The position numbers and the translations under genes are program-made. The notes beneath the pieces were generated by a model, which ran no database searches, was not told the origin of the DNA, and worked only from the letters and a program-made list of their open reading frames with translations. Shown here one piece after another: positions 2,590 through 46,846 of a stretch of DNA of 64,000 nt. The DNA lies in sequence record MW879341.1; one strand, given 5' to 3'. Position 1 is the first letter of the stretch. Each line of letters begins with the position of its first letter.

Positions 2590-2830
2590 AGTGAGGGCAT
2601 AAAACGAGACATCCATTCGGACGTCTCACATTTGTGTCTTTTATAGGCGCGGCGAACTACCCTACAAGCGATCGCTGTTTATCTGGGTAGTTCGCCGCCA
2701 CCGACCCTCAAGTGCTCATCGTCGATCGAGTGTGTATAAGGCAGCAGGTCTCCGCGTATCTGCACGACCAAGGCTCGCCACACGTTCTCGTCACACTATT
2801 AACCTAACTGAGTATTTTATTACAAGTGAG
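2590..2830 (+). ncRNA. candidate structured leader or ncRNA
   Basis: About 250 nt with no convincing ORF after an early promoter. Contains a 14-bp stem (2649-2662/2685-2698), gagac/gtctc and ataaaa/ttttat stems, and agtgtg/cacact. Confidence 0.4.
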
Positions 2831-2836
2831 TACATT

Positions 2837-3259
2837 ATGGAATTTTTAGATCCTGTAACCGGGAAGTGGATTAATTCAAACCGCATTCCCGAAGAGGTCC
2901 GTGAACGTATTGCCGATACCGTGGACTGGGACAGTGAAGAAGCTCGTCACAAAATCACCGGTGACGTAGATATCTTTCACGATTGGGTAAACAACAACTT
3001 CGGGATGCGTGAGTTGAACGAAATGTTGGAACCCGCTGACGGTTCTGAACCGGTAATGCCGGAGGAACCCTTCAAGATCGACCCAGACAACCCTGGATAC
3101 AAGTACCATCAGAAACTCGTGCGTCTCTATCCAGATGCTGAGATTCGTGCCCAGGTTGTTAACGATGCGTTAGAACGCGCTATGGACGGCTCAAAGCATC
3201 TCCCGCCAGATGAGCTGTATGATCCAGACGACGAGGTGGACGACTATCATCAATGGTAA
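2837..3259 (+). CDS. acidic hypothetical protein
   Basis: The ATG at 2837 (MEFLDP) is preferred over the track's GTG at 2732, which lies inside the structured leader. Confidence 0.7.
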   Translation: MEFLDPVTGKWINSNRIPEEVRERIADTVDWDSEEARHKITGDVDIFHDWVNNNFGMRELNEMLEPADGSEPVMPEEPFKIDPDNPGYKYHQKLVRLYPDAEIRAQVVNDALERAMDGSKHLPPDELYDPDDEVDDYHQW

Positions 3260-44318: not shown

Positions 44319-44362
44319 GCATAAAAGCCCCTCTACCTTTTCGGGTAGAGGGGCAGCTATGT
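44319..44362. terminator. bidirectional terminator
   Basis: gcccctctacc/ggtagaggggc with gcata and tatgt flanks. Confidence 0.8.
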
Positions 44363-44375
44363 GCGTCTTTATTTT

Positions 44376-44852
44376 TTATCCTTCTCGAAGTTTCCTTTCT
44401 AACTCTCGAAGGTCTGCATCAGATGCCCCTTGCTTACCCACACCTAAAGCGCTGAGTCGTATAAGTTCTTCCGTGAACTCTCTGGGGAGATGCATGAATT
44501 GTATCAAGTCTAAGCCGAATCGATCTTTGATCGAGTGCTTAATATAACGACCTATCAGATTGTACAGCCCGCTGCCTTCGGTGTATCGTTCAGTGGGATG
44601 CATCGCCACTATACTGAGTGGGTTCGCATTTGGAGAGTTATGGTTAAAGATCCCGTAACTCTGTTCGTACGACTCCAACAGTAGAATGTCTAAGTCAACC
44701 CCACTGATGACATGGTCAACGTGAAACAGTAACGTACCTATTTCTGTACGTGATCGGTCTATATGACTGCCGAAGGTTGGGTCCGCAACGTGTCTGGCTA
44801 GATTGCGTTCAGGTCCTTCAGAGCCTGGTCGATCTTGTGGCGCTGAAGGGTC
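44376..44852 (-). CDS. gp76-like -1 frame extension of the gp77-like protein (tail-chaperone 'T' part)
   Basis: The frame is open from 44870 but has no start codon or SD until a TTG at 44678. It opens just before the slippery site. Confidence 0.65.
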   Translation of the reverse strand, partial: DPSAPQDRPGSEGPERNLARHVADPTFGSHIDRSRTEIGTLLFHVDHVISGVDLDILLLESYEQSYGIFNHNSPNANPLSIVAMHPTERYTEGSGLYNLIGRYIKHSIKDRFGLDLIQFMHLPREFTEELIRLSALGVGKQGASDADLRELERKLREG

Positions 44853-46384
44853 AAAAAAACTGACATCATGTCAAGCGGCACGATGCGAGACTTAGGACCA
44901 TTGCCCTTCATCTGTAATGCACCGCACTTCGGACATGCGTAGTTTACATAACCCACGATCGCGATAGTAACCGCGTCGATATATTCACCGATGGCTTTAA
45001 GGAAAGTTGCCTTGATAGACTCTTTCGAACTGATACGTACGATTGAGGCTTCGATGGACACACGGTCTTCAATGCGAGTGGTGATACCCTTCTCATCCGT
45101 GATCTCAATGGCTTTAACCCAATGAGAATACTGACGACCTGCTGTGGTACGCGCAACGTCAGAGATGTGATCGTTACGTTCTTTACCGATCAGCGTTTGA
45201 CCGAAGGCTTCATCCGTATTACGAACAATAGTTTCAACCCAGCTGTAACCAGAGTTTTCATACTGTTCGATGTTCGGCGTTTCCAGTTCAACGGTAACGC
45301 GCTCGTTCAGCTTACGTACACGACCTTCAGTGTACAGGTCAAACTCAGACTGATATTCATCAATCTGTTCCTGACGAGTACGGCTGTTACGCAACGACAT
45401 CATGCGCTTCTGCTTGTCTGACAGTGAGGTACGATCTACCCACAGCAGTTTACCCAGGTCGATCATTGCTTCTACAACGTGGGTACACTTAGTCAGGTCG
45501 GCAACGCACGGCTGACGGTATGGATAACCGCCCGGATAGGTTGCAGTAACCATCGCCCAGATAATGGTCGGCAGGTCAGTGACACGGATGATTTTCTTCA
45601 GTGTCTCTGGGTTGTCGTTCGGTGCAGTCGTTGAATAAACGTGACGCATAATAAAGTTAACCAGATGGCCAACGATATACACAGACGTGTTGGAGAACAC
45701 CAGACCTTTAGTCATACGACCCAGGCTGACTTTCTCCTGAGCAATCTGACGTTCCAGTTCGTACAGGTCTACGTCATCCGCAGCCTTTACAGAGAACCAG
45801 ATGCCAGAGTGCCACAACGGAACCTGGATAACCGCACCCATACCGATAGCGCTGGTCACACGGTTCAGTGCGTCTTCACCCGTTAACAGTTCACCGCCAG
45901 TAACTGGCAGGCGTTGAGAGCGTGCGCCTAATGTAGCGTCATCGACTTGGAGTCTCTGAGTCCACTCACGCGTACCCGCAGTTACAGTAGACTCAAAGCG
46001 GTCGTGAATATCGCCAGTACGGAAATAGTTACCGTAGGCGTCTTCTACCGCTTCAATCCATTTGGACTGGTCTTGCGGGTTATCAAATTTACCGTCCTGC
46101 TGGTTTGTCAGCTTAGCTACGGTATCACGAATGGTACCGAACAGCAGATTCAGTGGTGGCAATTTACGAACTTCGTCATCAGTGCGCTTGAATCCACGGA
46201 ACTGATCCTGAGGCTCCACAACCGATGAAGTCACAGGAGTCTCAGCGTACAACTCCTCATCTGCTACTTCGTCAGTAGGAACCAGAGGCTGCTGAGCAAC
46301 CTCTTCAAATTGTGGTGGAATCACAGCATCTTGGTCATCGTCTTTAAACGAATCAGGAGCCTGTGCATTCTCTTCGTTAACCAT
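44798..46384 (-). CDS. phiKZ gp77-like conserved protein, putative tail/baseplate assembly chaperone ('G' part; T4 gp26-like Zn motif)
   Basis: Acidic N-terminus; PCVADLTKC and YACPKCG Cys pairs; GGAG SD. Confidence 0.7.
   Translation of the reverse strand: MVNEENAQAPDSFKDDDQDAVIPPQFEEVAQQPLVPTDEVADEELYAETPVTSSVVEPQDQFRGFKRTDDEVRKLPPLNLLFGTIRDTVAKLTNQQDGKFDNPQDQSKWIEAVEDAYGNYFRTGDIHDRFESTVTAGTREWTQRLQVDDATLGARSQRLPVTGGELLTGEDALNRVTSAIGMGAVIQVPLWHSGIWFSVKAADDVDLYELERQIAQEKVSLGRMTKGLVFSNTSVYIVGHLVNFIMRHVYSTTAPNDNPETLKKIIRVTDLPTIIWAMVTATYPGGYPYRQPCVADLTKCTHVVEAMIDLGKLLWVDRTSLSDKQKRMMSLRNSRTRQEQIDEYQSEFDLYTEGRVRKLNERVTVELETPNIEQYENSGYSWVETIVRNTDEAFGQTLIGKERNDHISDVARTTAGRQYSHWVKAIEITDEKGITTRIEDRVSIEASIVRISSKESIKATFLKAIGEYIDAVTIAIVGYVNYACPKCGALQMKGNGPKSRIVPLDMMSVFLTLQRHKIDQALKDLNAI
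44852..44858 (-). promoter_or_regulatory. predicted -1 ribosomal frameshift heptamer T TTT TTG
   Basis: In the correct reading phase (Phe-Leu codons) near the end of the upstream ORF; same heptamer as phage P2 E/E'. Confidence 0.65.
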
Positions 46385-46387
46385 GCG

Positions 46388-46846
46388 TTACTCCTGGGGT
46401 GCTTTCAAACGCTCGCGGGCAGCAGCCAGCTGCTCCAAGGCGGGATTAATGTAATTGCCGACTTCACGGGTAAATGACTGAAGCCACTCCTCATACTCGC
46501 GACTGGTCGCCAGTACTTGCATAATATTGTTGCCATCGATGCGCTTGGTACGTGCGGCTTTGTCACGCTGCACCACACCGTCCAGACGTTTAGTTAAACG
46601 TTCCAGGTTAGCGGCGACTTTCATGCAGCGATCTGTGAAGGAGGAGAGGTCGTCGATTTGTTTCATCAACTCGACATTACGAATCTCAACTCCTAATTGT
46701 GTGCAAGTTGCTATAAGTGAAAGACAATGTTGGTGCATGCGATCCAGTTCGTGATACGACTGGGTGGTGTCCGCTTTAGACATGCGGGGCATTGTGTTGT
46801 TCTGGCGTGACATCTGCGTTTCCTTTGTTATAGCAATTTTAGTCAT
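46388..46846 (-). CDS. helical/coiled-coil hypothetical protein
   Basis: 152 aa, co-oriented with the gp77-like gene. Confidence 0.65.
   Translation of the reverse strand: MTKIAITKETQMSRQNNTMPRMSKADTTQSYHELDRMHQHCLSLIATCTQLGVEIRNVELMKQIDDLSSFTDRCMKVAANLERLTKRLDGVVQRDKAARTKRIDGNNIMQVLATSREYEEWLQSFTREVGNYINPALEQLAAARERLKAPQE

Follow-up and report, generated by a model that had tools for sequence, protein, structure and literature searches.

Frameshifted tail-assembly chaperone pairs of long-tailed phages (lambda gpG/gpGT; P2 E/E+E'; phage G gp181/gp182, PMC8570332) arise from a -1 shift a few codons before the stop of the upstream ORF, which gives two proteins with a common N-terminal body and an added C-terminal domain. 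The products in the known pairs are roughly 100-300 aa, the gene pair lies immediately upstream of the tape-measure gene within the tail module, and the signal is conserved across a very large phage group despite low sequence identity. A second point of reference is provided by T4 gp26 and gp51, which a review lists as baseplate-hub assembly chaperones (PMC3004832); these are separate genes and are not known to involve a frameshift. A third is bacterial dnaX (tau/gamma), in which a -1 tandem slip within a long ORF yields two products in a set ratio; the slip is driven by flanking stimulators and the shifted frame stops almost at once, giving a shorter product.

We asked whether a comparable event takes place in a core gene of phiKZ-like giant phages. 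The window analyzed is a 64,000-nucleotide stretch of Erwinia jumbo phage pEa_SNUABM_54 (MW879341.1). A first-pass annotation had proposed that a gp77-like ORF in this window carries a -1 slippery site followed by an overlapping frame without a start codon, and had interpreted the arrangement as a G/GT-type tail-assembly (tape-measure) chaperone pair. The observation itself held in every detail that we checked, including coordinates, codon counts, the stem and the predicted product lengths (528 aa and 511+158 = 669 aa), whereas the interpretation found support only in part. The features of the locus are as follows.

46388 to 46846, minus strand: co-oriented upstream ORF (152 aa) in the position of phiKZ gp78, whose stop lies 3 nt before the ATG of the gp77-like gene, so that the two are probably in the same operon; it has no PHROG hit, but an ORF of about 110-250 aa sits directly upstream in every annotated relative.
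44798 to 46384, minus strand: 0-frame gene (pEaSNUABM54_00305), the 528-aa homolog of phiKZ gp077 (core gene cg18), with a predicted terminal helix that only the unshifted product would carry.
44852 to 44858, minus strand: slippery heptamer T TTT TTG in X XXY YYZ phase, the proposed -1 shift site; the 0-frame codons read GTT TTT TTG ACC and the T7 run is 44853-44859.
44376 to 44870, minus strand: open window of the -1 frame, 165 codons including the stop, closed upstream by a TGA at 44873-44871; after the shift, 158 codons (44852-44379) would be read.
44798 to 44852, minus strand: two-frame overlap, in which the 0 frame encodes the terminal helix and the -1 frame a variable Pro/Ser/Arg/Glu-rich linker.
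44679 to 44797, minus strand: start-less coding segment of the -1 frame, between the 0-frame stop and the first possible start codon (the TTG at 44678, the 65th codon of the frame); it holds the best-conserved block of the extension, encoded at 44792-44769.
44376 to 44603, minus strand: the only part of the -1 ORF annotated in GenBank, a 75-aa CDS (pEaSNUABM54_00304) that starts at an internal ATG and represents the C-terminal half of the ORF.
44815 to 44849, minus strand: predicted hairpin (7-bp plus 3-bp stem), with CCTTCAG/CTGAAGG at 44849-44843 and 44821-44815, starting 2 nt after the heptamer.
44323 to 44354, minus strand: intrinsic terminator (11-bp stem with 8 G-C pairs, then a T tail), 22 nt after the -1 ORF stop, which marks the end of the transcription unit; an equivalent hairpin follows PHIKZ076.4 in phiKZ.

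The 0-frame protein belongs to phrog_4585 (E 6.5e-119) and a tblastn search finds homologs in 247 phage records, including PHIKZ077; cg18 is listed as a core gene in Table S3 of PMC10299810. The -1 frame matches phrog_12109 (E 1.5e-21), with profile positions 5-141 of 147 aligned to residues 21-158, so that the profile alignment begins at residue 21 of the -1 frame. The downstream pieces align over their full length in 30 diverse loci, and 1247 representative proteins match the domain profile. In phiKZ the partner ORF is PHIKZ076.4 and not gp76, as the first-pass annotation had it, since gp076 lies on the other strand.

Conservation of the slippery run among orthologs had been named beforehand as a test of the proposal, and we found the same layout in all 73 loci examined, which form at least 40 clusters below 50% identity. 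The set includes phiKZ, five other GenBank phages, 47 IMG/VR contigs, 13 divergent phages including SPN3US, RAY, OBP and Bacillus phage AgentSmith, the phages EL, PS1, Joad and LAh10, and two relatives about 90% identical to the locus in the window. Pseudomonas phage vB_PQ1 appeared to be a fragmented low-quality record and was left out. Each locus has a T5-T8 run at the same Phe codon and an in-phase T TTT, and a canonical T TTT TTN heptamer is present in 37 of 41 cluster representatives. The remaining four have only T5/T6 without a canonical tandem-slip heptamer, so that the shift there would rest on the P site alone. The Phe codon is TTT in every locus, although TTT makes up a median 27% of Phe codons elsewhere in the same genes and 0% in five of them (log10 P = -21.6 over 40 clusters, given each gene's own Phe codon usage). 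The preceding third base is T in 51 of 54 loci. These observations indicate synonymous-site constraint on the run, beyond what the encoded protein requires.

The reading frame downstream of the run provides a second line of evidence. In the 40 cluster representatives the -1 frame has no stop for 150-178 codons after the run (up to 180 among all loci), against a mean of 14.7 stops per 150 codons upstream of it. The first ATG/GTG/TTG is scattered from 2 to 135 codons after the run, and in about two thirds of distinct loci it lies downstream of the most conserved block of the extension, which has column shares up to 0.9. In this phage no near-cognate start precedes that block either. Comparison with the two relatives of about 90% identity shows that the start-less segment evolves as coding sequence in the -1 frame: 23 of 31 substitutions fall on -1-frame third positions, and 18 codon changes are synonymous and 9 non-synonymous. 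The region around the site is nearly invariant in these relatives, with only 2 substitutions in the two-frame overlap, both at 0-frame third positions.

We next looked for elements that might stimulate a shift. The hairpin after the heptamer is predicted to form in this phage (z = -2.15 for a 100-nt fold) and is kept only in the closest clade, in two loci (L008/L010) and in the relatives of about 90% identity, and folding of the 75 nt after the run in 47 distinct loci, against shuffles and an internal control, revealed no family-wide structure (mean z -0.64 against control -0.31, p = 0.17). We thus rejected the hairpin as a general stimulator. Upstream Shine-Dalgarno-like words are likewise not enriched (7 of 41 representatives against an 18% background). 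Such an element is not obligatory for phage chaperone-type sites. We also looked for natural in-frame fusions of the two parts among 31 gp77 homologs and among the best 150 of the 1247 domain representatives, and none was seen.

To address function, we searched each frame on its own. Pfam, NCBIfam and PDB sequence searches of both pieces and of a 7-member profile found nothing, with no Pfam family matched for 7 diverse members at E up to 5. PHROG searches returned only families of unknown function, apart from a PHROG named 'baseplate hub' that matched one of 32 members at E = 0.24. A structure model of the 528-aa protein (pLDDT 81, pTM 0.83, terminal helix at residues 506-527) gave no significant Foldseek match against the PDB. 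Against BFVD it matched seven models at E 1.4e-6 to 1e-3 (probability 1.0), four of which carry baseplate-type names such as 'Baseplate hub assembly protein, T4-like' and 'Baseplate hub subunit' and three of which are unnamed or uncharacterized, although TM is only 0.44-0.58 on the target (one outlier, a 974-aa model, at 0.19) and 0.28-0.32 on the query, and there is no solved structure of the family for comparison. Some GenBank annotators reached the same label. Tail-assembly chaperone folds appear only at E 0.16-1.3. The extension yielded a poor model (pLDDT 59), and its Foldseek search recovered only its own family. The first-pass annotation had likened this downstream block to the T4-like gp26/gp51 pair, a likeness that was not shown, as the block matches nothing outside its own family. 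That annotation had also cited the slip site of phage P2, which plays no part in the present argument.

The genomic setting also differs from that of a tape-measure chaperone. The neighboring genes encode RNA polymerase beta-type subunits, a helicase, a DNA polymerase and a homolog of phiKZ gp079 (annotated 'structural head protein' in phiKZ), with no adjacent tape-measure gene, and the same neighborhood is seen in phiKZ and SPN3US. No chain of any solved virion structure matches the family profile, and Goslar gp081 is not mentioned in the main text of the Goslar virion paper; this is only indirect evidence on whether the protein is absent from the virion.

The explanation that we favor, with good confidence, is that the gp77-like gene is decoded in two ways. 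In this view most ribosomes would read through the T7 run and stop at 44798, giving a 528-aa protein that ends in a terminal helix. A minority would slip back one base on T TTT TTG, with the Phe-tRNA re-pairing on the U run, and read the -1 frame to 44376, giving a protein of about 669 aa in which the last 17 residues are replaced by a flexible linker and a domain of about 140 residues. What sequence comparison establishes is the site, its phase, the open start-less -1 frame and purifying selection on that frame. That the shift is ribosomal, that its efficiency is low and that both products are made and needed are inferences, and the evidence is comparative throughout. A role for the pair in baseplate-hub or tail assembly, like T4 gp26/gp51, is inferred from fold likeness alone, and a second binding surface added by the extension would follow only by analogy with frameshifted tail-assembly chaperones. 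A family-wide -1 recoding event is therefore strongly supported and a recoding fusion very likely exists; that it is ribosomal is likely but somewhat less secure, and the assembly-chaperone role remains tentative.

Among alternatives, transcriptional slippage is the best surviving, though we consider it unlikely. Here a phage or host RNA polymerase would stutter on the T run and add one U to a fraction of transcripts, whose standard translation would yield the same fusion protein. The signal is a plain homopolymer of up to 8 T, no ribosomal stimulator is conserved, a weak hairpin ends 3 nt before the run in this phage, and these phages transcribe their genes with their own multisubunit RNA polymerases of uncharacterized slippage behavior, subunit genes of which flank the locus. 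On the other hand, nine loci have only T5 and thirteen only T6, which is shorter than the runs on which bacterial polymerases are known to slip appreciably. The canonical in-phase heptamer in 37 of 41 representatives also speaks for a ribosomal mechanism, but its phase is constrained by the conserved Phe-Phe residues and so is not an independent test. Transcriptional slippage is not excluded.

A scenario without recoding is very unlikely. In this case the downstream ORF would be a separate small gene expressed from an internal or non-canonical start or by re-initiation after termination, and the T run would be conserved only because two Phe residues are needed there. All 24 GenBank records opened annotate two separate genes, the best 150 database proteins of the extension family are all small, and a few lineages have a start codon at or near the 0-frame stop and could also use coupled initiation (an ATG overlapping the upstream stop in RP12, a TTG next to it in Eowyn, and one further locus, L045). 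However, amino-acid need explains neither TTT in every locus where TTC is the preferred codon nor the T before it, and the conserved N-terminal part of the domain lies upstream of any ATG/GTG/TTG in about two thirds of lineages. The first start is 41 codons past the 0-frame stop in this phage and 74 codons past it in phiKZ, called starts are inconsistent (giving 74-182 aa), and the -1 frame is never closed between the run and the domain in any of the 73 loci.

An artefact, in which the T7 run is a homopolymer sequencing error or the gene a decaying pseudogene, can be all but dismissed despite the error-proneness of homopolymers on some platforms and a GenBank record that stands alone at megablast level, since 73 of 73 independent genomes and metagenome contigs from many laboratories show the same two-frame relation with run lengths of 5 to 8, the two relatives of about 90% identity, independently assembled from unrelated samples, carry an identical T7, and both frames are under purifying selection.

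Full-text literature searches, which did not cover subscription-only papers, found no description of this frameshift and no report of a trans-frame product. phiKZ gp077 is one of the few dozen core genes of a much-studied phage family and is still labelled 'hypothetical', while the downstream ORF is missing from the core-gene list. A conserved frameshift would correct the annotation of the homologous gene pair in the 247 GenBank phage records and in many metagenomic contigs, would add a core protein form, and would point to a concrete role in baseplate-hub or tail assembly for two orphan families. It would further extend the frameshifted-chaperone theme to a phage lineage and a protein fold where it was thought to be missing, and it offers a natural series of T5-T8 slip sites without evident stimulators. 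A more far-reaching possibility, which we regard as unlikely though not excluded, is that all phiKZ-like jumbo phages (the nucleus-forming Chimalliviridae and their relatives down to Bacillus phages) depend on a so far unrecognized recoding event in cg18 that yields a hidden core protein domain. The T4 gp26/gp51-type hub-assembly proteins would then be the functional counterpart, in these large myoviruses, of the frameshifted tail-assembly chaperones, and the two-product strategy would be either ancestral to contractile-tail phages or reinvented in a non-homologous protein.

A comparison with the systems introduced above places the locus as follows. With the frameshifted tail-assembly chaperone pairs it shares the predicted anatomy of two products with a common N-terminal body, made by a -1 shift close to the upstream stop (17 codons before it here, 11-46 codons in relatives), as well as a signal conserved despite low sequence identity, the lack of an obvious stimulator and proteins that appear not to be part of modelled virions. 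It differs in having no sequence or significant fold membership of that family, in predicted products of 528 and 669 aa (the proteins are about four times larger than that family's), in its position among RNA polymerase and replication genes, and in a slip site that is a pure T run. With T4 gp26/gp51 and their T4-like relatives any likeness is confined to the predicted fold of the 528-aa protein; there is no sequence-level family hit, the T4-like proteins are 250-310 aa and cover only part of it, and the -1 extension has no detectable counterpart. As in dnaX, a -1 tandem slip on a homopolymer-type heptamer inside a long ORF would yield two products, but here the shift would lengthen the protein by 141 residues (158 added in place of the last 17), and no stimulator is conserved.

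The locus lies on the minus strand of Erwinia phage pEa_SNUABM_54 (MW879341.1), a 272.6-kb jumbo phage in which every gene nearby is annotated as 'hypothetical'. A first-pass annotation had proposed that a -1 shift on a run of seven T's, closely followed by a stem-loop, joins a gene related to phiKZ gp77 to a downstream frame without a start codon. We re-examined the sequence and found that every stated detail of the sequence held. The codons around the run read GTT TTT TTG ACC, which places the heptamer in the X XXY YYZ phase. The features of the region, all on the minus strand, are as follows.

46388-46846, a co-oriented ORF in the position of phiKZ gp78
46384..44798, the 0-frame ORF, encoding 528 aa
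44886-44863, a weak hairpin (8 pairs, 3 G-C) flagged by a terminator scan, ending 3 nt before the T7 run
44873-44871, a TGA that closes the -1 frame
44870 to 44376, the reopened -1 frame, 165 codons including the stop
44859-44853, the T7 run
44858-44852, the slippery heptamer T TTT TTG
44849-44843 and 44821-44815, the two arms of a stem that is predicted to fold
44792-44769, the sequence encoding the best-conserved block of the -1 frame, two codons past the 0-frame stop
44678, the TTG that is the first ATG/GTG/TTG of the -1 frame (its 65th codon)
44603, the ATG from which GenBank annotates only the last 75 codons of the -1 frame
44354-44327 plus a T tail (to 44323), a strong intrinsic terminator (11-bp stem, 8 G-C pairs) after the -1 stop

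An equivalent hairpin follows PHIKZ076.4 in phiKZ (about 4262-4290 of L007, the phiKZ locus of our comparative set). The transcription unit therefore ends after the extension rather than after the 0-frame gene. A co-oriented ORF of about 110-250 aa, of unknown function, sits directly upstream of the gp77 homolog in all annotated relatives; the copy in pEa_SNUABM_54 has no PHROG hit.

We next asked about the identity of the two parts, handling each frame on its own. The 528-aa protein is a homolog of phiKZ gp077, and tblastn finds it in 247 phage records across Pseudomonas, Erwinia, Salmonella, Vibrio, Serratia, Klebsiella, Ralstonia and other phages. It matches phrog_4585 (E 6.5e-119) and corresponds to core gene cg18 (Goslar gp081, phiKZ gp077, RAY gp267, 'hypothetical protein') in Table S3 of PMC10299810. 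Four of its cysteines (C293, C300, C484 and C487, encoded at about 45508-45483 and 44935-44924, minus strand) are at least 90% conserved in a 32-member alignment, suggesting a metal-binding site, although the C-terminal Cys pair is missing in the FLC9 and RP12 lineages. Several records (Joad, LAh10, ZPAH34 and RisingSun) label the gp77 homolog a 'putative ZipA-like cell division protein', which is probably a spurious match to the low-complexity acidic and Pro-rich N-terminal region (residues 1-44, disordered in our model). The -1 frame translation matches phrog_12109, with profile positions 5-141 of 147 aligning to residues 21-158. Homology thus begins about where the 0-frame gene stops, far upstream of any start codon.

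To test whether this arrangement is conserved, we collected 73 loci: the pEa_SNUABM_54 locus; six GenBank phages, including phiKZ; 47 IMG/VR contigs; 13 further divergent phages (RAY, SPN3US, Bacillus phage AgentSmith, Vibrio pTD1, OBP, CR5, Wellington, Yong XC32, KpLz-2_45, Phabio, SA002, YC1 and pEa_SNUABM_48); EL, PS1, Joad and LAh10; and two ~90% relatives from unrelated samples. Pseudomonas phage vB_PQ1 (PQ516283.1) was left out of the counts because the record, with 488 features in 184 kb and the gp77 region split over several short CDSs, looks like a low-quality assembly. The first 67 loci fall into 40 clusters below 50% protein identity. Every one of the 73 loci has a run of 5-8 T at the same conserved Phe-Phe position near the C-terminus, with an in-phase T TTT, followed by a stop-free -1 frame of 150-180 codons. 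Where the record is annotated, that frame ends at the stop of the small downstream gene. In phiKZ itself the codons are ACT TTT TTT ACT, and the -1 frame runs 165 codons to the stop of PHIKZ076.4, of which only the last 80 codons are annotated. In a Serratia/Klebsiella clade (PCH45, a Serratia 2050HW-like locus and KpLz-2_45) the 0 frame continues 37-46 codons past the run, against 11-24 elsewhere, giving a much longer two-frame overlap.

Several lines of evidence indicate that the conservation of the run exceeds what the encoded protein would require. The first Phe codon is TTT in all loci, although TTT is a median 27% of Phe codons elsewhere in the same genes and 0% in five GC-rich ones. The base before it is T in 51 of 54 loci, against a mean third-position T frequency of 0.27, and the three exceptions keep TTT TTT. 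Over the 40 cluster representatives, log10 P = -21.6 for TTT alone, an approximation that treats the clusters as independent. In the 150 codons upstream of the run the -1 frame carries a mean of 14.7 stops, whereas in the 150-178 codons downstream it carries none in any of the 40 representatives. In many loci the -1 frame closes only 1-4 codons before the run, so that the open frame effectively begins at the run.

We then considered whether the start-less stretch is translated. The first possible start codon lies 2-135 codons after the run and is not positionally conserved. The -1 pieces from 30 diverse loci align over their whole length. The best-conserved block has column shares up to 0.9 and lies upstream of the first ATG/GTG/TTG in about two thirds of the distinct loci; in pEa_SNUABM_54 no near-cognate start precedes it either. 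Against the two ~90% relatives, 23 of 31 substitutions between the 0-frame stop and the TTG at 44678 fall on -1-frame third positions, with 18 codon changes synonymous and 9 non-synonymous, and the pattern is the same in the annotated part of the ORF. The overlap itself is almost invariant. Public gene calls for this ORF, including BFVD and representative-library hits, range from 74 to 182 aa, as expected if there is no real start; RAY gp266 (2601-3149 of the RAY locus), for example, was extended 136 nt into gp267. The ORF is absent from the published core-gene table although 1247 representative clusters match its profile.

With respect to mechanism, 37 of 41 representatives carry a canonical in-phase T TTT TTN heptamer (20 with T, 14 with C, 2 with G and 1 with A as the last base), while the others have T5 or T6 and allow only a P-site slip. 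We found no conserved stimulator. Folding the 75 nt after the run in 47 distinct loci gave a mean z of -0.64 against -0.31 for an internal control (p = 0.17), and Shine-Dalgarno-like words upstream are not enriched (7/41 against 18%). The stem noted in the first-pass annotation is kept in the nearest clade (loci L008 and L010 of our set and the 90% relatives) but starts only 2 nt after the heptamer, closer than is usual for such elements. Another clade, the L017 group with T5, has its own tight hairpin. A slippery-site-only, low-efficiency ribosomal shift is therefore the best reading. Transcriptional slippage would give the same protein and is not excluded, though the T5 and T6 lineages argue against it; the weak hairpin that ends 3 nt before the T7 run is probably chance but could pause a polymerase at the run. 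What sequence comparison shows is the conserved site, its phase and an open -1 frame that evolves as coding sequence, whereas the ribosomal nature of the shift, its low efficiency, the long product itself and any role for it are inferred.

None of the 24 GenBank records opened annotates a joined CDS, and full-text literature searches found no description of the proposed shift, although, since most subscription journals were not covered, an earlier mention cannot be ruled out.

We next asked what the function of these proteins might be. A confident model of the 528-aa protein (pLDDT 81, pTM 0.83) has no significant match among solved structures. Among predicted viral structures it first matches its own family and then models named 'Baseplate hub assembly protein, bacteriophage T4-like', 'Baseplate hub subunit' and 'Baseplate protein' (E 1.4e-6 to 1e-3), while tail-assembly and tape-measure chaperones appear only at E 0.16-1.3. 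The shift site sits at the start of the last predicted helix (residues 506-527), and the long form would therefore lose that helix and gain a linker plus the extra domain. The extension could not be modelled well (pLDDT 59) and matches only its own family. No chain of any solved virion structure matches the family profile, and Goslar gp081 is not mentioned in the main text of the Goslar virion paper; both facts are weakly consistent with a non-structural role.

A comparison with known assembly chaperones places these observations in context. The first-pass annotation had interpreted the pair as a G/GT-type, frameshifted tape-measure chaperone, an interpretation that our analyses support only in part: the proposed -1 shift is the best reading of the comparative evidence and an assembly-chaperone role is a reasonable inference, but membership of the G/GT family is not supported. 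A review of T4 lists gp26 and gp51, to which the first-pass annotation had also likened features of the pair, as hub assembly chaperones (PMC3004832). A different jumbo phage, phage G, has the ordinary G/T-type pair next to its tape-measure gene (PMC8570332), whereas the genes neighboring the pair in pEa_SNUABM_54 encode RNA polymerase subunits, a helicase and a DNA polymerase, not a tape-measure protein.
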